Assembly (NCBI GenBank): GCA_029953675.1
Contig: JAMWBK010000001.1
Location: 2,294,001-2,358,000, forward strand
DNA: 64,000 nucleotides
From: Rhodosorus marinus CCMP1338
Taxonomy: Eukaryota; Plantae; Rhodophyta
Reading direction: 5' to 3'
Shown here: positions 6,262-43,492 of the stretch, piece by piece
Position numbering within the stretch: the first letter of the stretch is position 1
Layout: every line of letters begins with the position of its first letter
The notes under the pieces: generated by a model
Databases searched by the model: none
What the model saw: only the letters and a program-made list of their open reading frames with translations
Told to the model about the DNA's origin: nothing
Position numbers and translations under genes: made by a program

Positions 6262-8654
6262 ATGAGCGGTCTAGTGCGGTGGATTGGTTTGGGGTTGGTT
6301 TTGGTATGTTTTGTAGGGGTTTGGGGCCAGACAGAGACTATCATATCTGTCTCTGATGAAATCCCCCCGCCGAGTAGTGTACTCGAGAATGACATGCTTT
6401 GGGGAATCACTGTTAACCTCGACAAGTTCAACTCGTCTACGCTGGTTATAACGGCGGTTGGCCCAGACCTCGAGCAGCCGACCGACATGGCTACTTATGT
6501 GTACAGAGTGAATTCACAGGGTCAGGCATCTCAGAGTTTTTCTCTGTTTGGATACGGCAATTGCGCCGATGTCTCGTAAGCTTCCCTCCCGCCACCAAAA
6601 CAAAAGCCGATCACAATCGACCTGCCTTGGGGTATCTGCATCTATATGAACTTGTGTGTGCTACGTAAGAGTTCCCGCTGCTTAGAGTACTAATCATTTC
6701 GTTTTTGATGTTGTAAATTTTAGAAACAACGTGATCTACACATCCTCGACGGACGGGAGCGTGATGGTTATAGAGCTGAACAGTTCTGGAAACTGGGAAC
6801 CTACGCAGGAGGTTGTATTCTTCACGCCGGATCAACTTGATGATCTTGATAACTTTGGACGAATTTGTGCTGCCGGACCCGACGCCGCGCTGTTTACATT
6901 CTTCGATGTCATGGACAGCAGCGGTCCAATTCCAACGTTTGATACCTTTGACATGTATGTTGTGCGAAACGGAGACTCATACGAGTGCCTTGGTGGGCAG
7001 GGCGACTGTACGAAGAACACATTGGCCTCAGGACTGGATACCTTCCAGTACTTCCAGTTCGATCAGAATGGCGACCTTGGGTTGCTCAGTGTTGATTCTA
7101 TGGATATTGAGTTTGGAACGCCGGTATTCGACGTGTCGGCTGGAACCATCACCTTCAACGCAATCGGCATCCCCAGGGATGCCGACCCGTTGCCTCAGGC
7201 TATGGCCCTAGATAATGGAGCTCTGGCCTTCAACTACGCCTTTCTCCCGGAAATCAGTGATCCAAACGACGTGCGTGAGAGAGCATCGGATCCTCGGACC
7301 AGTTTTCTTCAGCTCAACATTGGGTTCTTTGGCGAGCTCCTAGGGTTTGTGACTGGACCTACGGGTTTCCAGAGGGAGAGGCAGGTGACTGTGAACAAGT
7401 TTGAGAACAGTAGTCCCAACGAAGTTACAGATTTCTTCAGCCTTGTTGACGACAGTGCAGCTGGAAACCTTATAAATATCGCCGTTCAAGATACGACTAT
7501 GAGTAGTGGCGAAGTGTTTGCGTTGAGCAACTTCACGTTCGACACTACTGCAAGCGGTACGACCGTGGTCAAGGTATGGCTTTTGCCCTTGGGAGCCAGT
7601 CCGACCCCCGTTCCGAGCAATACGCCGACTACCACTCCGACGCAGAGCCCATCTACGAGTGCCTCTGTGACCCCGACCGCGACTATGTCAGAATCTGCGA
7701 CCCCGACCGCGACTATGTCAGAATCTGCGACCCCGTCTCCGAGCCCAGATGTGAGTACATCTGTGAGTGCATCTGTGAGTGCATCTGTGAGTGCATCTGT
7801 GAGCGAGTCTGTGAGTGAGTCTGTGAGTGAGTCTGTGAGTGAGTCTGTGAGTGAGTCTGTGAGTGCGTCTGTGAGTGAGTCTGTGAGTGAGTCTGTAAGT
7901 GCGACTGCAAGTGCGTCTTCCAGTGCTACACCGAGTGAATCTGCGACTCCTTCGGCGACTCCGACTACCACTCCTACTCCTTCTCCCACGGCGGCGCCAG
8001 TTTGCTTCTCAGTTCATTCTTCTACCATGCAATGGACTCCGTCCGGACTGAAATCTGTCACTCTGGGTGACCTGCGACCTGGCAATCTCGTACAAGCCTT
8101 TGACGCCAATGGAAAATTAGCCCTGACGGAGGTCGTGCTAGTGCAGCACCATGATAGCTGGGATACTACTCAACTGCTCAGAATAGCTTACAGGACTGAG
8201 GCTGGGGAGGAGAAATCACTGCATGTGTCCGAAAACCATTACCTCGTGAAGGGGCTGCAGCCGCGAGTATATCAACTGGCGCGCGACTTCAAGGTACTCG
8301 TCGCGTCCTCCTATTGGTTTCGAACTAGCCCGCTTTGCACTCGTCTAACCGCTTTTCGTCCATCACAATTCGCAGGTTGGTGATGAACTGCTCATCGCGG
8401 GGGTGAAGGGTCACAGCGCCGCGAAGATCATCAGCAGAACTGTGGTTGAAGAGCCTGTACGGAATGTACTTACTACGAGCGACATGATTATCGTAGACGG
8501 AGTGTTAGCGTCGTCCTACACGAACGTTCTCGGCATCAGTCCGATGCTGCAGGCTATGCTGACATTGCCGCTGAAGGCTTTGAACGCCCTGGGTCTGGGC
8601 AAACTGGCCCAGAACCTCGATGCATTCGCCAACAAGCTTGTGTTAAAGTCTTAA
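6262..8654 (+). CDS. Secreted Hog/Hint-domain protein A (~720 aa): signal peptide, propeller-like domain, Ser/Thr/Pro stalk, Hedgehog-type Hint domain, amphipathic tail
   Basis: Exons 6262-6575, 6724-8293 and 8376-8654 join in frame through GT..AG introns (branch ctaac at ~8345). Hydrophobic N-terminus. Hint starts PV|CFS (Cys codon 8003-8005) and includes LRPGNLV, VSENH and IVDGVLASSY, matching Hedgehog Hint blocks. Confidence 0.88.
7667..7897 (+). repeat. Coding tandem repeats in the stalk of Hint protein A
   Basis: 30-nt unit (ATPTATMSES) x2, then 12 copies of a 12-nt unit encoding S-[T/A/E]-S-V at 7754-7897. Confidence 0.95.
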
Positions 8655-10483: not shown

Positions 10484-13037
10484 TCAGTTGCGTCCGAGGA
10501 GAGTTCCAAATATAAACGAATGAACGGCCTTGTCGAAATAGTTGGCAACGCCGTTCAGCCCCAGCAGGTGCAAAACCTTGAGCGGAGCCAGGAGCGCTGC
10601 CTGTATTCTGGTCGGGATATTCAGCACTGCGGTGAAGCTGGAGGCGAGGACACCGTCCACAACGACCATATTGTTCATCGTCAGTACGTTTCGAACTGGT
10701 CCGTTGGTCTTGTGAATGCTGGTAATTCTTGCTCTAGATGGCTTCCGCCCATCGTCTCCGACAATGAGAAGCTCGCCGCCAACCTGGTATGGATTGCCCA
10801 AAAGGTGGAAAGGCTCACAGCGTGAGTACGTAAATACTGAAACAACTGATGCACTGGGTCACAGAGTTCATAGTGGAGGTTGCCTACCTTGAGAGATTGA
10901 GCCTTCACGAAGCGGCGAGGATTCAACTCCTCGAGGATAAGATGGTTTCCTGTCAATTTCAAAGTACCAGTCTTTGCATTCGCCCCCTCATAAGAGACTT
11001 CAAGAAGCTCAGTAGCCGCTTCGCAATTTGCGTGCTGGACGAGCACAGCTTCCGTAAACACCAGCTCTCCGGTTGCGTTGAAAGCCTCTACCAAATCTCC
11101 TGAGCGCACCTCCCTAAGTGCAATCTTTTCGACTTCGTTTCCTCTCATCACCGTCACCTCGGACTCCGCTGAGAAACACACCGGTTCCGCGGTCGGGGTA
11201 GGAGTCGGGGTAGGTGAAACACTAGGTGAAGCTGTTGCGGTTTCGGAAGGACTTGTTGAAGTAGTCTCTGAAGCCGTCGGAGTCGGAGGTGAGTCCGTAG
11301 GTGTCGGGGTCGGGGGTTCGTCAGTAGGCGTCGGAGTCGGAGGTGCGTCGGTCGGGGTCGGAGTCGGAGGTGCGTCGGTCGCGGTCGGAGTCGGAGGTGC
11401 GTCGGTAGGCGTCGGGGTCGGAGGTGCGTCGGTAGGCGTCGGAGTCGGAGGTGCGTCTGTAGGCGTCGGAGTCGCAGGTCCGCCAGTGGGCGTCGGAGTC
11501 GCAGGTCCGCCAGTGGGCGTCGGAGTCGCAGGTCCGCCAGTGGGCGTCGGAGTTGCGGGTCCGCCAGTAGGCGTCGGAGTGGCAGGTCCGTCGGTAGGCG
11601 TCGGAGTGGCAGGTCCGTCGGTAGGCGTCGGAGTGGCAGGTCCGTCGGTAGGCGTCGGAGTGGCAGGTCCGTCGGTAGGCGTCGGAGTAGCAGGTCCGTC
11701 TGTAGGCGTCGGAGTGGCAGGTCCAGAAGTAGGGGTCGGTGTAGCAGGTCCAGACGTTGGCGTAGAAGACGGTGTTGGCGTTGGTATCGGCGTTGGCGTT
11801 TCCAGGAGATAAACGTAGACCGTTTGTCCATCTCCCTTGTTCACAGCACCAGTTGAGGGACTTCCAATGGCGATAACATTCGCTGCGGCCATGTCCGCAT
11901 CACGAATTGTATCGCTGAAGCCGGCCGTACCCATATCGTTCGTTGCGATCAAGTATTCATTCACGAAACGCCCGCTAGTCTCGTTGAAGGCCACAACTCT
12001 GATGTCCAGGGGAGAATCCACATTTGATAGTACGTCTCCTTGTACGTAGAATACCCACTCTGGGGGAACAGCCGACACTCGAATGAAATTCGTCTCGTTT
12101 CTCTGAAACCGTGGGCCCGTTGTGCTATTCGTGTAGTCTACTAGATATTGTCGATTGTAAGCAAGGGTTTTGTTGGCAATATCGCCAGCACTGATGGCTT
12201 CTCCACCTCCTCCCGTACCCACAGTGTCGAAGATGGGAGTCGCAATTTGTCCGGTCTGACTAATGGAGTAGACAATGATCTGCTGCGGATTTGTCTCGGA
12301 GATAACTTGAAGCAATGATCCATCGGTATCAAACTTGAAGCGCTGGTCTAGGTCGAAGCGCCCGGAGAGGTCGGTTGGCTGACAGGACCCCTCGCCGCCG
12401 CGGCAGGTCCAGTTGCCATCAGTGCCCCTGAAGAGGAAGTATTCCACCGTATCTAATGTAGAGCTGTCGAAGGACGTCAGCATGAAAACATCGGGCCCAA
12501 GAGCACAGTTGAATCCGAATCGGCCGGCTGGGAGGACGTCTCCAGTGTCAAACGTCTGCTCTAACGTAGCTCCATCTGATTGAACTGAATAGAACCTAAC
12601 CTCGCTTCCTGTTCCAGTTGTGGCCATGGTTCCGTCGCTGGTACAAGAGCAAAGCAAATCGCTGGTTAATGACCGGCAGATAAAGGCGCACAGCCCTGGT
12701 TTTGTGACTGCAGAGTAACAACTTACTAGACGTCCACGCAGGCTCCCCATCCAGAAAGGTTGAGAATATTCGTAGGCTGACTTTGACCAGTAGGGTCCAG
12801 CTTGTAAATGTAAGTGAACACCGCAAAATCTCCTGACGGGTTGGATGGGATAGCGTTCGTCACCAGCACACTCTCATCAAATCGATCGAGCCTGACGACT
12901 CTCCCGAAAAGCAGATCCTCTCCAGCCGCATTTGCGGGAATATCAATTTCCGAATACGGCACCCTCCTCTCCACCGCAGTGACCCCTAAAAGCATGCCCA
13001 GTAGGATACATCCTACACCAATATTCCAGTACCTCAT
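10484..13037 (-). CDS. Secreted Hog/Hint-domain protein B (~786 aa), paralog of protein A
   Basis: Exons 13037-12727, 12637-10888 and 10783-10484. Both introns sit at the same protein positions and phases as in gene A (after CxDV, phase 2; and K|VG, phase 0). Hint starts PV|CFS (Cys codon 11178-11176) and includes VRSGDLV, LTGNH and VVDGVLASSF. Confidence 0.88.
11276..11755 (-). repeat. Coding 27-nt minisatellite forming the Pro/Thr stalk of Hint protein B
   Basis: About 18 copies of a 9-aa PTPT-x-x-P-[A/P]-T unit in blocks: SG x2, DG x5, GG x4, DA x5, DE, DS. Confidence 0.95.
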
Positions 13038-15872: not shown

Positions 15873-18800
15873 TCAGCTATACTCGGCCCTGTAGGTCTGC
15901 TGCAGAACCCCTTGGTCCCGAACTTTGACAGTGAAAGTGTTCTTCAGCGACGGGTTATGTTCCCACTTCACAAAGGTCTTGCCTTTTTGAACTCGCGGAG
16001 CGGAAACAGTAATAAGCGCTCCAACAACAGCATCAATTTCCACCGGCCCTGGGCCTGTCCTTGAGTCAGCAGTTACGGTGAAACCATCCTGGTTCGAAGT
16101 TACAGCAACCTTCCGAAGTTTGGGCTCTATCGACTTCGACACGGTGTGACAAAACTTCCCGGCGGCATCAGTGCAAGCTGTCAGTTTCACTTCGAATGAA
16201 AACGTCTGACCATGGTCTGGAACGGTAAAATTGTTTCGAAGCCTATTGCACCCCTGCGTGAACATGTGCGTATGGCAGTTGGGGTCGCAGTGATGCAGAG
16301 GAACTTCAAAGCAATGCTTTTGGATCTGCATTCGCTGCCCCTTGTGATTCAAGCACTTCCCGGAGTATGTGATTTTCTGTCCAATGACAAACTCCTTCGG
16401 CAGGTCATCTAGCGAACATCTAGGATTTAGCGCACTAGCCTCACAGTCTACAACGGCGTCACCCCAGACTCCCAAATCATGCTTTACCCCTTGCCTTCCG
16501 GGCAAGACGTTCAGAAGCAGGTTAGTCGCCCCGAGCATTGGGCACTGCAGTAAAGCAGGTCCATCACCGCCTGTCATGATCTGGGTTGGGCATGTCGAGG
16601 TAGCCCCAACCGCACCCTTTGCAACAAACATCATCTCTCCGTAGTTTTGGCTCAGATAGCTAACTCCAACCTTCGAAATAAACTTGGAGCAACGGCCAGG
16701 AAGTTCAAATCGTATGGAAGATTGCGCGTGCTGAGTAACTCCGGATTTGTAGTTCACCAAGCTGCCCGGCGGGGGTTGCGTACGAAGCGTGATGAGCCCG
16801 CCGTTCCAGGCTTTGTTCGCATAGTATCCAGGTCCCCTTCCAGTTCTCGGCACCATTGCACCCAAGTACCTGATTTCCCCATTACAGTTCAGCCTTGCCC
16901 CGCCAAGCGCAACGTACTCGAAATCAAACGGATTTCCTCCATTTATCGACGCTCGAATACCCAACACGCTTTTCCCACCAATCGACACGAAGACGTTCTG
17001 CGCAAGAGTAGAGCCATTCAGGACCATTGTCTTCACAACATTAGAATCCAGCAGAAACTCCAACTTAGCGTTTCCATCGAGAGCGTCCACCCTCCCTTCG
17101 ATTCCAACCTGAGCCCACATTGACCCGCAGCCTTGTACGGCGTACTCGACCAGTTTGGGTGCCTTCAGCTGAATACCTCGGAAATACGTCTTCCTGACCC
17201 CGCTCATGCCCTGCTTCAAAACTCTTAGGCGGCTTTGGTTCCCAAGAGTATAGTCCGTTCTCCCATTGCTACCCAGAATCTTCAACTGCTCTACTTTAAC
17301 CATTAGTCCGCTCGGCGGTGGTAGTACAGTTGTGAACGAAGCAGTCCTTCCGTTCTGAATGCGCTGCCCGTCGGCGCCTCTCACAGCTTCGCCAACAACA
17401 ATCGAGTACCGTGAGTTGTACTCCAATTTCCCTGCTCCCAAAATCACGCGCGTAGAACCTTCCGCAAAGCGTGCTTGGAAGGCCACAGTGTTTCCACCAC
17501 TGTCTCTAAACTTGATACCCACCAAAACGCTTGTTGGATCTATCGGCTGCGAAAATTTTATCTCGGGATCCCTTTGCACGTTCACGTTTGTCTGCCCGAC
17601 GGAAGGTATGAAGCTTACCACACGCGGAGCAGCCTTTATTGACGCCCCGCAGCGAAATATCATGTCGCCCCAGGAAACACGGTTGCGGTTAACCCTTTGA
17701 TTAAGCCCGGTTATCTCCGCAGTGAGTGTGACCGTGGCCCCGGGTTGGACATCGAGGTTGAAGCTCAGCCCATCCGAAACTCTCGTCAGAACTCCGCTCG
17801 TTAAGAGAACTCTCCGAATCCCGTTAAATCGCTGAAGGACTTGTACTATGGACCGTCCGTCATCGAGCTTGGTCACCGCGTCGTCGATACCAACTGTTCC
17901 AGACAGCTTTTTGCAACTGTCTGGTACTTTCACGGACACGCTAGCGCTTGGATTCATGCCGACACCTTTCTCAAACGTCTCCCCTCTAATAGCAATTTTG
18001 GTTCCGTCCTTCAGGCCTGATTTCCCGTTGGATAAATCTTTTTCCATGGGACCCACACCATTCTTCACATTCAACCATTCTAGATCCGAGAAATATGTCG
18101 CGAACCCAGCACCAGTCTTGAACGAACTTCGAAAGTTCTTGGTCATGGTCCGACCCTGCTCATCCCTCAATCCTGTCAGCGTGATTGTATATTGGGTATT
18201 TTTCTGAAGAGGCTTCGAAGGTACGAACGTAGCAATATCTTCGCTCTTGTCAAAGGAAGTCTTGCCCTCAACCAAGTTCCCATTGTCGTTTCCTCCTTGC
18301 CTCATAATAAAGCCGTTTTTCAACGATCCGAACAGTACGTTCTTCGAAAGGGTAATCTTAATTGATGTTGTATACTCGACACCCTGAGCACCATCTGGAG
18401 GATTGATAAACTCCACCTCCGGAGGGTTGGTGTTCGGTTTGTAAAGAATCTTTCGAATCTCCCGAGCTGCCAAGGATATGTAATGAATCTCTTTCGACGG
18501 CGATGATTTCATCGATACAGGACCCCCAAGGTCCGAGGCGAACTTTTGCACATTGGTTAGTTGCAGCCTCTCGTTAATCTTCGCCCTTCTCATCCAGCCG
18601 AAGACGTAGTCGGTGTAGTAAATCCAGTCTTGGTCAGCCTCCGGCCAGTCGGAATTCGCTGATGAAATACGGAGCAGAGCGCTCGCAGCCTGTTTCCGCG
18701 GGTAAACAAGAAGTCGGATGAATTCAATTAGGCGTGGAAAAAAAGCAATGACACGGCGCCGCCTGGAAGTCTTCCATAGCAGGCAAGAAGATTCCTGAAG

Positions 18801-19846
18801 CTTTTTTGAGTACGACTTCTTGGGGGTCAACTTACCGCCCCTTCCGCGTGGTTCCAGAAAACAACCGGGTCGAACCTCCTTCCAGGACCATTACCGGAGT
18901 TGAATGCCCTGCACTCGGGAAAGTTGGAAAATCCGCCATTCTTCGTTCTAGCCTCCCAGCAGGGCCAACCCATATTAGAGCCAGCTCTCACTGGGTTCAT
19001 TTCCTCCCATGTGGACCAGCCTACCTCTGCCACTAGCGGCATCTTCAGAACATCATCGTAAACAACTCGCCACGGATTTCGGCAACCCAGACCCCAAACC
19101 TTGGCTCGATTAGCTGCAGCTCCGACTCCCTGCTTCATGAATGGATTCCCTTGTACTCCTCTACCATTTATGTCCACCCTCAAAAGCTTCCCATTCAAAC
19201 TGTCTATCTGCTGAGCCCGAATTGCCAAGTTGTCAGCACCATTGCCACCTCCGTCTCCAGTTGTAACGAGCAGGTGCTTCTGTGGATCCCAGTTGAGGCC
19301 CCCATTAGCATGAGTGAAACTCTCTGTACACATAACATCCCTTGTGATGGGAATCTTTTCGCATCCTGATCCTGTTACCGATCCAAGAATGACTGTCATG
19401 GAATTCTTCAAAGCCAGAGTTCCCATCGCGTTGGTCTTGAAACGTGAGACTTGCGCCGTCTTTGGACCTTCTCGATCATTTTTGTTGTTCTCAAACGTGT
19501 AGAGGAAGAAGACAAGTTTGTTGGTGCTCCAATCGGGGTGCACAGCACATGCAGACATTCCCCTGTCGTGATGATCATTAACCATGTTCCTCAGATCGAG
19601 GAAAGGGATGGCCTTCACTATGCAATTCTCAACGAGGAAAACGAATCCATCCTTCTGGGTTACGATGAACCGATCCTTGCCATTCGCCGGCGGCAAAAAG
19701 CACAGATCTGTAGGGAAGCCCGGAATCTTCCCACAACTCTTAAGCTCATACTGGTCCGGAAAATCGGGAAACCCGGAAACAATCAGCAGCATACAGGCTA
19801 CCACTAGACCTGCCACCAGGCCCATCCCCCTCACTAACTTTGCCAT
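15873..19846 (-). CDS. Secreted glucose/sorbosone dehydrogenase-family (PQQ-type beta-propeller) protein with Big_5 Ig-like and NPCBM/NEW2 modules (~1275 aa)
   Basis: Exons 19846-18836 and 18689-15873, joined by one phase-0 intron (gtaagt...ctaat...cag). Signal peptide present. GSDH motifs DRGMSACAVHPD, HANGGL, VTTGDGG, NGKLLRVD, WGLGCRNPWR, EVGWSTWEEMN, NMGWP. Two Big_5-like repeats (PEVEFINPPDGAQGV..; PRVVSFIPSVGQTNV..). One clear NPCBM (YFSDLEWLNVKNGVGPMEKDLSNG...GETFEKGVGM) and two degenerate ones. C-terminal LHHC..CHTH..FTVPDH module. Confidence 0.9.
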
Positions 19847-39905: not shown

Positions 39906-42900
39906 TTACGCCTTCGTATCCAGCTTTCGACTCTTCAGCCTACGTAATCTCAATCCGTACACGTAAGGCCCTCGAACACCACCGTGGTTATGTCTGTCCC
40001 ATTCACCGGTGACTTCCATTCTCAAGACTTTGCCGAAGAAGGTCTTCATCTTGTAGATGGTTATCTTTTGTCCCTCGTCACTTTGCGAAGCCGCGCGGGG
40101 AAACTGGTCCCGTAGTGTGCACAGCCGTACGTAGTCCTTGGAAGTATGGCGATCCGTGTTGTCTGTCAGCTCGTATGTTTGTTGTATGTACACCGCAAAA
40201 CTGTGAAATTCATGCTTCTCGTCGCCGATCATCCTCTTCATCATCTCATTCCTTTCCGCGAGGTCCATTGACTCGTTACCACCGGCTTCTTTCGCAGACT
40301 TTCGGAGATCCTTTGCGGGACAAAAAGAATTCGAAAACCATTTCGTTTAGCCCGCAGCTCTGTCTCCCGGTTTGTTCACTGCTTGAGCAAACTCAGACAC
40401 AAGCCTACCTCGCTAGTCGTTACGTTGGTTGGGGATGAGCTCGGATGTGCAGAACCACTCATACGAAAGGGTGCGGTGCTCTGCGTCGGAGTGAGTCCAG
40501 AAAAGTCGTTCCGAACTTCGGCGGGGTTGAGTATTGAAATGCCTGCAGTGGGACTTATGAACAACGGCTTGGATTGATGCTTCTGCTCCGCCTACCACAG
40601 ACACGAAGTGAGGATTTGCACAGTCAGCATTCAACGTTCAGTCGCACTGGAGCCTTTTCGTCTTGTTGGCCGGCGTACAATGGTGCCCGGGTCGTCAGAA
40701 CGTAGCTGCCACAGCATGGAAAACTGTTTGTGATTTTCTCGTCTAGATTTGTTTTCAGGATGGTCAGAAACCCTCCCCGAGTCGATTTCCGAGTTTTGTA
40801 TGAGGGACCACCTAAGCACATAGAACGAACATACATGGTCAATATCGATCCAATTCTTAATGTCTAGGAGCGAGCATTTTGAAGACGACATCCGGTACCT
40901 CTTCGGTTGCTGACCACTCAGAATTCCCCTCATCACCACAAGTGCGTTCCTTGCACGTTGTCTCGCAAACGACGCGTCGACTATTGGCGCAGGATAGTTT
41001 ACCCCCAGTCCAACTCCTGCCTCCCGCAGAACTGAGACCGGGGCTTTCCAAGGACAGTGAAGATATCTGCACAAGATGCAGAGTCGAGCACGCGTTCAGG
41101 AGATGATTCCGATTGGTCCAAAGCGGAGGAGCTCGCTACTGTTTCTTTGCCAACGCAACTCACTTGTTCGGCAGCTTGGACAATTCTGGCAACCATTTTC
41201 TAACATAGTAGCCAGTTGGGTCCTGTTTTCTGGCCAACCCGACGGGATTGATCAGGCTGTTGACGGGCAGGGAGTCTGAATTGGATCCAAACGACCACTG
41301 CCATCCGACAATGTTGGACTTCATGTCACCATCTACCAAGAGGTTGAAGAACCTGTTCGCTCCGGGCTGGAATTGATCGGCAGAGAAACAAAGAATGCCA
41401 TTAGACACCGCTTCCAAAGAAACGGGAAAACAGAGTTTGGCACTCACTCACCTGCCATGGCAGCAAGAGGTACTTCGTCAGGAACGAGGCCAGCAAGTAC
41501 CTGAGGATATTGTGTATCCAGCCCGTTGCTTTGAGGTCCCGAAGCGCCGCGTCAACGAGTGGGTAACTGTGTAGGTATAAGCAAATGGTACACGCCTTCT
41601 TCTTGAGCTTTTCACTAGTCTCAGTGGGAGTTGGTATTGAGGTCATTTCTACATACCCGGTACGCGCTTCGTTCCAAGATATCCATGCGTCCTTATCATT
41701 GCTCCAAGGGAAATTCTCATATTGAGGTATGAGACTGTAGTTTGCCGCGCTTGGGTTGTGGTACAAAAGGTGGTGAGCAAACTCTCTCGAGCAGAGGTTT
41801 TTCAGAAATGCTCTGGATGCCTGTGCATAGCCCTCAACCTCCTTCTCGCTGGTCTTCACGCCAAGCTTGGTCATCTGATCAGAACAAGATAACAGTAAAC
41901 CCGCATAGCTTCAGCGACTTTGGTTGGGCTTTCCGACACCAAGCACAGCTTTGAAAGTTCGAACCTGGCTTCTAACGAAGTGGTAAACTTGTCTGGGCGA
42001 TATTTCTCCGAACTGAAGGTGCGGAGAAAGCTTAGAGGTCCCGTATATATCTCTTCGACTCCTTCCTTCGCCAAAAGTCTTGAATGAACCTTTAAGAAAC
42101 CTGAAGAGGGAGTAGAATCCCGGTTGGGCTTGTCAGTCGACAATAGGAGCGGTCCCACGATCCCGTGGCGAGAGCTGAGGTGCTTACTCGCTGAGTTTCT
42201 TTATCGCTGACTTTGATCCTGGTTGCCAGACCCTGTTGTACTGTTCCTCCCGTAGCTTCGGAAGGTCGAGCCCAAGTTCATCAACACTCAGGGAAGGCAC
42301 CGCCTTAGCACAGTCGCCGAGCGCATTAGAACGAAACGTTTAGAAGAAGAAACTTGGGTGGAACTTTGGCGGCAAGGAGTGTTCACCTTGTTCCCTCCCT
42401 TAGTCAAGGGTGCCGGCGCCGGTGCTGGAGTGGGCATCGGCGGCGGAGGAAAGTTCATCCAGGCGGTCATGTAATTGTGCAGCACGGTGAATCGGGCCTC
42501 CAATTCCCACGGCTCTACGAGCAGCTCAGATTTCAGTGACCGCGCGTCAATCCCCTTCAATGTCAGAGTCTGCCTGAGCTTTTCCTCCTGATCAATAGTT
42601 GCTATATTGCACTGTCTATGCCAGTAAACGGCGTCAGCTTCAACCTGCTTGACCAGTTGCCACAGCTGCACCACGGAGAGCAAAAAAGTGGAATAGGAAC
42701 GTAAGCGTTTCCAGTAAGCAGAGCGCAAAGAGACTAAGCGTTCCGGGGTTGTAGCCAAGTAGCTTACTGTTTCGTAAGTATTGGTTGAGTCCATTCGGAT
42801 CACCAGCTTCAGGTTCAACGCGCGCAGGTCGCTATCCAGGCTCAGGAGGGATTTCTTCAACCACCTGAAGAAATTGCGTAATCCAGTACTTAGCTTTAGC

Positions 42901-43492
42901 AAGCATCCCATGGCTGTGTCCTGCTACGCCTAAACGAGAAAACAAACAAAAAGCTTACCAACGCCCGGCCTCTCCAGGGCTCCAGAGATCTGGGTTCCAT
43001 ATGAAGACTGGGATGACCGAGCCTCCTACCACGACAAAATACCCGAAGATTCGATTAGGAGAGGGAAACAAAACGTCGATTGCACAGGTTGGAATTAGAA
43101 CCTCACCTCTCCTCAGTGCCATTGATAGCGCAAGGTGATCCGCGACCCTGAGATCATGGCCTTGGAACCACACGATAGTAGCTCCTTGCTTTCGCGGACG
43201 CTTCGACTTTTTCCAACGTCCATTTGAGTCATCTTGAGCCAATCCCCCGACGCCATTTTTACCGTTCTGTTCCCGATACTTTGCCTTTGTCAGGTCTCCA
43301 GAGGGTGGTGGACGCTTCTTTCGTTCGACATTCGACGACAGAATTGTCGTGGGCACTTGGCTTTGAACTGCTCAGCAGGTAAAACCAGAAAAAAACCATA
43401 ACGAGCAATGAGTCGAATAAAATAAACCCACGCTGCGTTCAAGCTAGAAACTCACCAGCGCGCTTTGATCTATCTCCAACCCCATACTGCAT
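39906..43492 (-). CDS. Plant-type cryptochrome/photolyase-family protein with N-terminal basic extension and long C-terminal extension, multi-exon
   Basis: PHR motifs IVWFQGHDLRVADHLAL, VIPVFIW, WLKKSLLSLDSDL, TSKLSPHLQFGEISPRQV, REFAHHLLY, FPW, TGYPLVDA, GWIHN, LLLPWQ, DGDMKSNIVGWQW, DPTGYYVRKWLPEL, HCPWKAP..AGVGLGVNYPAPIVD. Phase-0 introns link exon 40591-40409 to terminal exon 40310-39906. Confidence 0.92.

Follow-up and report, generated by a model that had tools for sequence, protein, structure and literature searches.

The closest described systems to the propeller considered here are PQQ sugar dehydrogenases of known structure, and A. calcoaceticus sGDH (1C9U), E. coli YliI/Asd (2G8S), P. 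aerophilum Asd (3A9G) and the S. coelicolor protein (3DAS) served as the comparison set. In sGDH the pair Arg228-Asn229 contacts O5 and O4 of PQQ (PMC6881789). The fungal AA12 enzymes of Coprinopsis cinerea (CcPDH) and Trichoderma reesei are eukaryotic, secreted, modular proteins with a PQQ-type propeller, and the PQQ they use is not made by the fungus itself (PMC6881789, PMC4133262), and a GSDH-like protein has been noted in brown algae (bioRxiv 10.1101/2024.02.19.579948). The HHIP and HIPL proteins of animals and plants share the propeller superfamily and are likewise extracellular. To our knowledge, eukaryotic quinoproteins have so far been demonstrated only for the fungal AA12 enzymes.

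The window, a stretch of 64,000 nucleotides from Rhodosorus marinus CCMP1338, carries on its minus strand, from 19846 to 15873, a single gene consisting of two exons and one 146-nt intron and encoding 1275 aa, with the following features.

15873..19846, minus strand: whole coding region, ATG at 19846 and TGA stop at 15873-15875, 1275 aa; equals R. marinus NDN08_005564 / KAJ8908860.1 and is colinear with the transcript-derived P0001
18836..19846, minus strand: exon 1, residues 1-337 (337 aa)
18690..18835, minus strand: single spliceosomal intron, GTAAGT...CAG, 146 nt, phase 0
15876..18689, minus strand: exon 2, residues 338-1275 (938 aa)
19772..19846, minus strand: predicted signal peptide (MAKLVRGMGLVAGLVVACMLLIVSG/F cleavage), from a hydropathy scan with the cleavage site inferred from the -3/-1 rule
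18438..19759, minus strand: GSDH six-bladed beta-propeller, residues 30-421, spanning the intron; Pfam PF07995 7e-26; AF2 pLDDT 93, pTM 0.93; Foldseek 3a9g E 3.6e-23, target-normalised TM 0.86; hhalign to E. coli YliI 99.8%
19310..19312, minus strand: His179 codon (FTHANGG), matching the Asd/sGDH catalytic His in alignments; no variation among 66 subfamily sequences
19076..19081, minus strand: Arg256-Asn257 codons (GCRNPW), equivalent to sGDH R228-N229 and invariant in the subfamily
18111..18431, minus strand: Big_5 Ig-like domain 1, residues 424-530 (Pfam)
17643..18104, minus strand: NPCBM/NEW2 module 1, residues 533-686 (Pfam)
17325..17633, minus strand: Big_5 Ig-like domain 2, residues 690-792 (Pfam)
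16875..17318, minus strand: second NPCBM module, a divergent copy, residues 795-942; 29.9 bits (cut-off 23.9), E 6.4e-7
16437..16874, minus strand: NPCBM module 3, residues 943-1088; E 4.3e-16, 59.6 bits against a cut-off of 23.9
16125..16436, minus strand: Cys/His-cluster Ig-like domain, residues 1089-1192, with no Pfam or NCBIfam family match
15876..16124, minus strand: C-terminal Ig-like domain, residues 1193-1275, weakly Flg_new / InlB B-repeat-like and always found after the His-cluster domain

The spliced product aligns without gaps to P0001, an MMETSP transcript product of 1275 aa (87% identity; junction between ...HAEGA and AASALL), and agrees at 1268/1268 residues with KAJ8908860.1 (NDN08_005564, labelled "hypothetical protein" in GenBank, Rhodosorus marinus), the model of which begins at Met8; exactly one intron is therefore present in about 4 kb, as an earlier note on this DNA had stated. 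The gene is intron-poor compared with the mean of about 3 introns per gene in the described genome of strain CCMP1338 (PMC10250338). P0001 and a second MMETSP transcript, P0002 (90% identity to the window protein), come from related Rhodosorus strains, between which all domains are 84-93% conserved. The locus is an intact nuclear gene of Rhodosorus marinus, and its orthologues are transcribed in related Rhodosorus strains.

The domains follow the order signal peptide, GSDH six-bladed propeller, Big_5, NPCBM, Big_5, NPCBM, NPCBM, Cys/His module and C-terminal Ig-like domain, so that the arrangement read from the sequence in the earlier note (GSDH, Big_5, NPCBM, Big_5, two NPCBMs and an LHHC..CHTH..PDH module) is reproduced by Pfam and motif matches. 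The signal-peptide segment is the only hydrophobic stretch found by the hydropathy scan, and the protein is probably secreted, to the cell surface or the mucilage. Exon 1 alone scores 91.6 bits against the PF07995 profile (cut-off 25), placing the protein in the GSDH superfamily, and the AF2 model with its Foldseek match to 3a9g identifies the fold as a six-bladed propeller. The two Big_5 domains total 111 bits and the three NPCBM stretches 160.5 bits in Pfam. NPCBM modules 2 and 3, previously described as degenerate, are indeed divergent but exceed the Pfam threshold of 23.9 bits even when scanned singly. A phmmer search of the PDB with NPCBM module 1 returned no solved structure at E<=0.01.

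The best Foldseek matches of the propeller are the PQQ sugar dehydrogenases 3a9g, 1c9u, 3das and 2g8s (target-normalised TM 0.80-0.86). In common with sGDH and Asd, the algal protein has the catalytic His, the quinone Arg-Asn pair and a G-x-P/W stretch at the Ca2+ position, and both are exported (the algal protein by prediction). It differs from them in a sequence identity of just 16-20% in the propeller, in the additional conserved disulfides C162/C173 and C296/C312, in RNPW-R instead of RNPQ-G and in about 850 aa of extra Ig-like, NPCBM and His-cluster domains. His179 aligns with the catalytic His of 3das, 3a9g, 2g8s and YliI (the general base, His144 in sGDH), so that the reported retention of His (THANGG) and Arg (GCRNPW) agrees with the solved PQQ sugar dehydrogenases. 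His179, Arg256, Asn257, Lys249, Arg260, Glu298 and Asp364 show no variation across 66 sequences and are largely kept in all the red-algal paralogues; in one short paralogue His replaces the Arg of the Arg-Asn pair. The window protein has the full propeller signature of the subfamily (C162, D170, H179, K249, W251, R256, N257, R260, GWPC-x-E and D364), every position of which is invariant in the subfamily alignment.

The two C-terminal arginines that bind the PQQ carboxylates, Arg406 and Arg408 in sGDH (PMC6881789), are absent from this protein and from the subfamily as a whole. In MAFFT and hhalign alignments the place of this R-x-R pair is taken by G-P-V-S in the window protein, by G-P-V in the consensus of the subfamily and by R-I-R(-D-V) in E. 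coli YliI, and the alignment is reliable here because conserved Asp and GPDG anchors lie on either side. The NCBIfam model for non-repeat PQQ dehydrogenases (TIGR03606) scores 48.9 bits, for exon 1 only, against a cut-off of 434.55. The designation as a PQQ sugar dehydrogenase is weakened by the replacement of the carboxylate arginines with Gly and Val and by the TIGR03606 score. PQQ-dependent dehydrogenase chemistry in the propeller is a tentative assignment, with chances slightly below even.

Sequence comparison places the protein in a large, uncharacterized bacterial subfamily of multidomain GSDH-propeller proteins, the core of which consists of the GSDH propeller, spacer or carbohydrate-binding modules, a His/Cys-cluster Ig-like domain and a second Ig-like domain. 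The searches returned 425 representative proteins at E<1e-30 (the best of them 36-46% identical and multidomain) and 280 loci in species-representative bacterial and archaeal genomes, with the best 80 of the 280 covering about 10 bacterial phyla; Myxococcota, Chloroflexota and Acidobacteriota are included, and Patescibacteria are also carriers. Bacterial matches align over the full domain length with E values down to 1e-81. The propellers of Corallococcus exercitus (L006), Chloroflexia (L003 and L015), Bryobacterales (L026 and L032) and MCU1326207.1 are 33-43% identical over their full length, and these proteins share the invariant residues, the disulfides, the His/Cys module and the terminal Ig-like domain. 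The modules in between vary across the subfamily (PKD, Big_5, NPCBM, PA14 or LamG), and in Chloroflexia and Bryobacterales proteins GSDH, Big_5, NPCBM, the Cys/His module and the Ig domain co-occur; the module set called typical of secreted bacterial enzymes in the earlier note does therefore occur in secreted bacterial GSDH proteins. In contrast to the bacterial proteins, the algal gene encodes a signal peptide of eukaryotic type, contains an intron and lacks the N-terminal SNase-type extension, and five modules separate its propeller from the His module, where bacteria usually have one domain of about 80 aa. No characterized member of the multidomain subfamily was found in the literature searched. 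These results define a widespread, uncharacterized bacterial family spanning hundreds of species and about ten phyla.

Nine red-algal sequences, from Rhodosorus, Bangiopsis and further samples, form one clade within the bacterial subfamily (UFBoot 96 / SH-aLRT 94), a single origin of this clade is required by 97% of the bootstrap trees, and in a quick tree a 100* branch splits the subfamily from ordinary single-domain GSDH proteins. The red-algal genes constitute a multigene family with at least three members in R. marinus, at least two in Bangiopsis and more in the further samples. The nearest branch of the tree comprises P0204, P0239, P0280, P0283 and P0286 (Pseudanabaena), the architecture of which differs and which long branches may have drawn to this position. 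The separation from HIPL, HHIP and AA12 is judged from E values and Foldseek ranks. With phmmer, Asd-type structures are matched at E 4e-11 and HHIP at 0.03 over 70 residues, with no AA12 match at E<=10 among PDB chains. The Foldseek order is Asd/sGDH, then HHIP (1e-17, after 19 PQQ-enzyme chains), then AA12 (E 1e-12 to 2e-12, TM 0.6-0.64). HHIP and HIPL have none of the accessory domains, and the red-algal clade nests among bacterial multidomain proteins. Of the GSDH phylogeny that the earlier note had proposed, the tree supplies the bacterial side, with HHIP/HIPL and AA12 compared by E value and Foldseek.

We infer one old transfer of the whole multidomain gene from a bacterium into the Stylonematophyceae lineage, probably followed by amelioration to a neighbour-like GC3, gain of one intron and duplication; the origin and architecture as described are very probably correct. 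The suggestion of horizontal acquisition is upheld both by the nesting of the red-algal clade in the bacterial subfamily and by the E values and Foldseek ranks that favour Asd over HHIP and AA12. Reshuffling, which had been part of the same suggestion, is unnecessary, since the joining of GSDH with Big_5, NPCBM and the Cys/His module already exists in bacteria, and the presence of the same combination in Chloroflexia and Bryobacterales proteins indicates that the unit probably arrived whole. Bacterial contamination or an assembly artefact in the algal genome might be suspected from the bacterial-type domain content, the very long exon and the solitary intron. That reading is ruled out by the canonical spliceosomal intron, which is spliced out in the transcript of the orthologue and the site of which recurs in an orthologue of 50% identity from a different sample (L001, Logan SRR22824282), by the 3.8-Mb contig with eukaryotic genes on both sides, by transcripts in several independent MMETSP transcriptomes from Rhodosorus and Bangiopsis and by a GC3 of 0.56, compared with 0.53-0.62 for neighbouring ORFs. 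The adjoining ORFs encode Hint modules and a photolyase exon, in keeping with the attribution to an algal nucleus. Vertical inheritance, or endosymbiotic gene transfer from the cyanobacterial ancestor of the plastid, is improbable. The nearest small group in the careful tree does include Pseudanabaena P0286, and the family is old enough for several deep paralogues, an intron and a host-like GC3. However, only a short branch (0.084) makes this join, and the algal rows are both long and of odd composition; in Pseudanabaena-type proteins the propeller is C-terminal and accompanied by Calx-beta, the His module being absent, whereas the accessory modules match Chloroflexia and Bryobacterales proteins; and among the sequences covered, eukaryotic members come only from Rhodosorus, Bangiopsis and the samples grouping with them. 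Transfer of the whole gene would make this a clean case of a multidomain secreted protein that moved into a eukaryote and then gained an intron and expanded into a family.

A separate alternative concerns function: PQQ binding may have been lost from, or never present in, this GSDH subfamily, in which case the conserved His/Arg/Asn/Glu/Asp pocket, perhaps with Ca2+, would serve some other activity towards glycans, for instance that of a lectin, a lactonase or other hydrolase or a beta-elimination lyase, and the metal site of the His/Cys module would have a structural or adhesive role. The subfamily-wide absence of both carboxylate arginines and the low TIGR03606 score are as expected on this account, and the fold family includes the non-enzymatic HHIP. 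The carriers include Patescibacteria, in which PQQ synthesis and respiration are both improbable. In the neighbourhoods of the bacterial homologues (123 ORFs), neither pqq nor cytochrome genes are found among the 25 commonest families, and there is no conserved partner, just scattered glycosyltransferases, NTP-transferases and GH6. A weaker six-bladed match, 9m58, is a lactonase fused to a Cu/Zn-SOD sandwich (PMC12362111). Against this, the residues at the reactive quinone end and in catalysis (His179, Arg256 and Asn257) are invariant in sequences from about 10 phyla and are kept in most of the algal paralogues, the closest structures by both sequence and fold are PQQ enzymes throughout, and the subfamily has invariant basic residues of its own in Lys249 and Arg260. 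E. coli, which lacks pqq genes, still uses YliI with imported PQQ (PMC13088180), and replacement of ligands is not disqualifying since AA12 enzymes hold PQQ with a partly different residue set (PMC6881789). We consider a non-quinoprotein function rather unlikely, although more probable than the other alternatives.

The best overall explanation, to which we assign a probability of roughly 0.55, is a transferred, secreted, glycan-bound enzyme of the PQQ type. The protein would be exported to the cell surface or mucilage, where the three NPCBM (CBM51-like) modules and the Big_5 spacers could tether it on galactose-type glycans. His179 would act as the base and Arg256/Asn257 would polarize a bound ortho-quinone, most likely PQQ-Ca2+ obtained from outside, so that the propeller oxidizes the anomeric carbon of an aldose or of a glycan reducing end to a lactone. 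Electrons would leave to an external acceptor, possibly via a metal centre in the His/Cys-cluster domain, a relay that would have its parallel in the cytochrome carried by the fungal AA12 pyranose dehydrogenase. AA12 is alike in its working parts, a PQQ-type propeller with a carbohydrate-binding module and an electron-transfer domain of its own (cytochrome b, AA8), but is a separate family with CBM1 and a haem domain in place of the NPCBM and the putative Ig-like His/Cys relay of the algal protein. A galactan or EPS substrate and a supply of PQQ by associated bacteria are speculation. If PQQ is used, eukaryotic quinoproteins would extend to an alga, implying dependence on a bacterial cofactor.

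The Cys/His module carries the motif PLHHCDPNCHTH...VPDH at residues 1134-1163, with the conserved pattern H1137-C1138-x3-C1142-H1143-x-H1145 ... D1162-H1163 set on an Ig-like sandwich. AF2 models the region as two Ig-like sandwiches (pLDDT 92.9), for which Foldseek against the PDB gives generic tandem Ig-like matches only (pilins, MSCRAMMs and complement MG domains; TM about 0.3), so a functional homologue is lacking there. Pfam searches with bacterial copies give faint Big_7 and Flg_new_2 hints only, and a word-index search with the module returned Rhodosorus proteins only and is uninformative on its wider distribution. The module probably binds a metal, and a beta-sandwich bearing C-x3-C and histidines is reminiscent of CuA. 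The idea of a variant haem-c attachment site was set aside because the modelled Cys pair brackets a tight beta-hairpin turn and not a helix; it is also disfavoured by the strict retention of C-x3-C-H in algal proteins routed via the ER, a compartment for which we know of no machinery that matures cytochrome c. A type-1 copper loop containing Met was ruled out since the Met after His1145 is unconserved (consensus Pro). A far bolder and distinctly doubtful proposal is that the domain is a new redox metal centre, for example of copper, forming the electron outlet of an unrecognized class of extracellular glycan-tethered quinoproteins, and that Stylonematophyceae acquired such a bacterial 'quino-metalloprotein' complete and depend for it on PQQ from associated bacteria; were it true, the algae would depend on bacteria for a cofactor much as for a vitamin, and photosynthetic eukaryotes would have their first PQQ enzyme. 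The pairing of the propeller with this conserved domain is in any case a lead to a possible new extracellular metal or redox module on glycans. The module is a near-obligate, un-annotated partner of the multidomain GSDH subfamily: residues 1089-1275 match bacterial modules in phmmer with E values down to 2e-14, H-C-x3-C-H-x-H...D-H is kept from bacteria to all full-length red-algal paralogues, and 158 of the 226 subfamily sequences contain the module, its commonest position being 80-84 aa past the propeller. In a metagenome search seeded from the module itself, a subfamily GSDH lay in frame or just upstream at about 29 of about 33 informative loci.

The gene is encoded on the minus strand of the window and comprises two exons. 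Its coding features and the domains of the 1275-residue product (the window protein) are as follows.

Features of the window gene (window positions) and of its product (residues)
19846-15873, minus strand: whole coding region, ATG at 19846 to TGA at 15875-15873, 1275 residues after splicing
19846-18836, minus strand: exon 1, 337 codons
18835-18690, minus strand: intron, 146 nt, GTAAGT...CAG, phase 0
18689-15873, minus strand: exon 2, 938 codons, closed by TGA 15875-15873
Residues 1-25: predicted signal peptide, the sole hydrophobic stretch of the protein
Residues 30-421: GSDH propeller
Residues 424-530: first Big_5
Residues 533-686: first NPCBM
Residues 690-792: second Big_5
Residues 795-942: second NPCBM, divergent
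Residues 943-1088: third NPCBM
Residues 1089-1192: Cys/His module
Residues 1193-1275: terminal Ig-like domain, faint Flg_new similarity

GenBank already contains this gene, labelled only 'hypothetical protein' (KAJ8908860.1, NDN08_005564, Rhodosorus marinus, on a 3.8-Mb contig; 1268 of 1268 residues identical, with the annotated start at Met8), which identifies the window as nuclear DNA of this red alga. A start at the in-frame Met1 further 5' (ATG 19846; window 19826-19846, minus strand) adds MAKLVRG to that model, supplies a positively charged n-region to the signal peptide and agrees with the start of P0001, an MMETSP transcript product of 1275 residues that aligns without gaps (87% identity, exon junction between HAEGA and AASALL). 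Pfam recognizes one GSDH, three NPCBM and two Big_5 stretches, the second and third NPCBM scoring 29.9 and 59.6 bits when scanned alone (cut-off 23.9), whereas residues 1089-1192 match no Pfam or NCBIfam profile. The motifs THANGG, GCRNPW and LHHC..CHTH..PDH reported in an earlier note are all present, and the domain series and single intron in 4 kb that it described are reproduced by Pfam, the spliced model and the alignment with P0001.

The window gene is a bona fide algal gene, very probably of horizontal derivation. Orthologues are transcribed in related strains, and its GC3 (0.56) falls within the range of the adjacent ORFs (0.53-0.62), which contain Hint modules and a photolyase exon. 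The R. marinus genome (31.2 Mb) has 8392 genes and 24,821 introns (PMC10250338), so that with one intron the gene lies below the mean of about three per gene.

With exon 1 as query, HMMER matched 425 of 1.84 billion representative proteins at E < 1e-30, and the top 150 of these are 33-51% identical and mostly 800-2400 residues long; single-domain ordinary bacterial GSDH proteins are far more distant (identity about 30%, E about 1e-27). Against solved structures, the propeller matches PQQ sugar dehydrogenases at E values of 4e-11 to 8e-6, HHIP only at 0.03 over 70 residues and fungal AA12 not at all in the sequence search. Species-representative bacterial and archaeal genomes contain 280 subfamily loci, of which the best 80 belong to Myxococcota (Corallococcus, Myxococcus, Archangium and Pyxidicoccus), Chloroflexota, Acidobacteriota (Bryobacterales), Actinomycetota, Nitrospirota, Rokubacteria/Methylomirabilota and Patescibacteria. 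The entire 400-residue propeller, including the part encoded by exon 2, aligns with bacterial loci (E down to 1e-81).

In a tree of 88 propeller domains (394 columns; IQ-TREE, LG+C20+F+G4 with PMSF), nine red-algal sequences form a single clade with UFBoot 96 and SH-aLRT 94, values that are approximate because the bootstrap stopped short of full convergence (correlation 0.971); one origin suffices in 97% of the bootstrap trees. These sequences are the window protein, P0001, L001 and P0141 (from Logan samples SRR22824282 and SRR22824290), P0142 and P0252 (Bangiopsis sp. CCMP1999), P0222, P0244 and P0287/P0292/P0293. P0222/P0289 is a second R. marinus gene (KAJ8907594.1, NDN08_007704), and P0287/P0292/P0293 is a short GSDH of the same species consisting of the propeller only, with His in place of Arg256. 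The Stylonematophyceae thus possess a multigene family, with at least three genes in R. marinus. The clade is nested in the bacterial subfamily, which a long, fully supported branch separates from ordinary GSDH proteins in a quick tree; this placement, the far weaker HHIP match and the undetected AA12 support the horizontal acquisition proposed earlier. The branch that connects the clade with its nearest neighbours (P0204, P0239, P0280, P0283, and the Pseudanabaena protein P0286) is short (0.084), and their architecture differs from that of the algal proteins, so no donor lineage is named.

The intron of L001 occupies exactly the same codon as that of the window gene, and P0141, from the same Logan sample, is intronless. 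For the red algae sampled here (Rhodosorus, Bangiopsis and the Logan samples), the single clade, the shared intron site and the host-like GC3 together point to one old transfer into the Stylonematophyceae lineage, after which the gene was duplicated and gained an intron. A small red-algal class has taken up and expanded this GSDH/His-Cys subfamily. Among the Logan loci, an intron-bearing orthologue stands beside an intronless 1258-residue paralogue of like architecture (L001 and L084, both in SRR22824282; L083 in SRR22824290); the single organism that holds both is probably a further stylonematophycean alga.

Each module of the window protein was also searched separately against the collected bacterial proteins. 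Big_5 and NPCBM domains follow the propeller in Chloroflexia (L003, L015 and P0149), in Bryobacterales (L026, L032, P0143, which is MCU1326207.1, and P0147) and in other bacteria, and the Cys/His module with the terminal Ig domain occurs in most subfamily members, including Myxococcota proteins that lack any NPCBM. The set of modules is thus of bacterial making and, in line with the earlier note, does occur in secreted bacterial GSDH proteins; judging from these sequence matches, the gene most likely reached the alga with its several domains already joined. Since bacteria already combine these modules, the 'reshuffled' enzyme of the note calls for no reshuffling in the alga. Domain order varies widely within the subfamily. 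Many bacterial members (e.g. P0146 and P0147) begin with about 200 residues of a staphylococcal nuclease-type (SNase/YncB) domain before the propeller, which is missing from the algal proteins.

The AF2 model of the propeller (pLDDT 93, pTM 0.93) has six blades, and its best PDB neighbours in Foldseek are all PQQ sugar dehydrogenases: 3a9g (E 3.6e-23, target-normalised TM 0.86), then sGDH, 3das, 2g8s, 7cdy and 2ism, with HHIP (1e-17) and AA12 (1e-12) behind them. His179 aligns with the catalytic histidine and Arg256-Asn257 with R228-N229 of sGDH, which contact the quinone oxygens (PMC6881789); none of the three varies among 66 subfamily sequences, and nearly all algal paralogues retain them. 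These features favour the PQQ enzyme proposed in the earlier note, but the site that would hold the PQQ carboxylates does not fit. These are bound in sGDH by Arg406 and Arg408, the former also having a conserved equivalent in AA12 (PMC6881789). The corresponding segment of E. coli YliI, Q-R-I-R-D-V-R-T-G-P-D-G, aligns with L-G-G-P-V-S-M-K-S-S-P-S-K in the window protein and, in the subfamily consensus, with G-P-V; MAFFT gives this alignment, and so does hhalign (99.8% probability over 343 columns). Both arginines are replaced, and the Asp and GPDG anchors are kept. The score against the NCBIfam PQQ-dehydrogenase model is likewise far under the cut-off.

Two invariant basic residues are specific to the subfamily (Lys249 and Arg260), and the algal proteins carry a Lys or Arg two positions past the lost Arg408 site; by analogy with Arg273 in AA12, these could make up for the lost arginines. 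PQQ-dependent dehydrogenase chemistry in the window propeller is accordingly a tentative assignment (probability roughly 0.45). That the same pocket serves a non-quinoprotein function would fit the loss of both arginines and the low profile score, but is rather unlikely in view of the fold and the retained quinone-contacting pair. The hypothetical scheme of PQQ-dependent action on galactan with a cofactor from bacteria is weakened by the missing arginines. The 123 ORFs around bacterial homologues show no recurring genes beyond scattered ones for polysaccharide biosynthesis and GH6, the commonest families including neither pqq nor cytochrome genes, and the papers searched yielded no study of any subfamily member. 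Candidate-phyla-radiation bacteria have a minimal redox metabolism, and the subfamily propeller is odd there for a putative PQQ redox enzyme. It was observed in large proteins of Saccharimonadia/Paceibacteria MAGs (L044, L054, L057 and L066); L044 has PKD, PA14 and CARDB domains in a Pfam scan, and no His/Cys module was seen in the other three.

The most interesting new point concerns a widespread bacterial GSDH subfamily, itself uncharacterised, whose propeller is tightly paired with an un-annotated His/Cys-cluster domain. An iterated search placed the module in 158 of 226 subfamily sequences, many of the others ending at a contig edge; it is separated from the propeller most commonly by 80-84 residues, with from 0 or 1 up to at least six intervening domains. 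When a metagenome scan was seeded with the module rather than the propeller, a subfamily propeller lay within the same ORF at 27 of 42 loci and just upstream of a frameshift at two, nine loci ended at a contig edge, one (L098) carried other domains instead, and the remaining three comprised two very short ORFs and L121, without a propeller in its own ORF, the only one examined. A rare exception to this otherwise tight pairing is the metagenomic locus L098 (Ga0207682_10016779, ~1744-2202), where the module follows FG-GAP repeats, fn3 and NPCBM in an ORF without a GSDH propeller.

AF2 run on a 56-sequence alignment (pLDDT 92.9) predicts two Ig-like β-sandwiches for the module and terminal domain, for which Foldseek returned only generic tandem Ig domains. 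At His1137, Cys1138, Cys1142, His1143, His1145, Asp1162 and His1163, conservation in bacteria runs from 79% (for Asp1162) to over 90%, and no full-length red-algal paralogue lacks any of these residues. In the model, H-C lies on one strand of a hairpin and C-H-x-H on the other, with the cysteines flanking a three-residue turn, and from the strand geometry His1137, His1143 and His1145 should lie on one common face. An H-x-H pair with a cross-strand histidine is typical of mononuclear metal sites, and the modelled hairpin suggests such a putative site here; the cysteines may either pair as a disulfide or serve as metal ligands. The C-x3-C and histidines within a sandwich also resemble CuA, a likeness that offers a lead only. 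Because the tie to the propeller persists despite the varying number of intervening domains, the module probably serves the propeller. Our preferred but unproven reading is that it would pass on electrons through a metal centre, much as the cytochrome domain does in the fungal CcPDH.

Elsewhere in the window, two long single-exon ORFs at 6731-8383 (plus strand, 550 residues) and 10681-12750 (minus strand, 689 residues) each have a Hint module of the hedgehog type at the C-terminal end (PF01079; E 4e-4, under the Pfam cut-off, and 2.8e-8, respectively). Pfam gives nothing for their N-terminal parts, and they may be Hint/'Hog'-type autoprocessing proteins of a red alga. The ORF at 42288-42911 (minus strand) matches the DNA photolyase domain (PF00875, E 7e-12) and is evidently a single exon of a split photolyase/cryptochrome gene.
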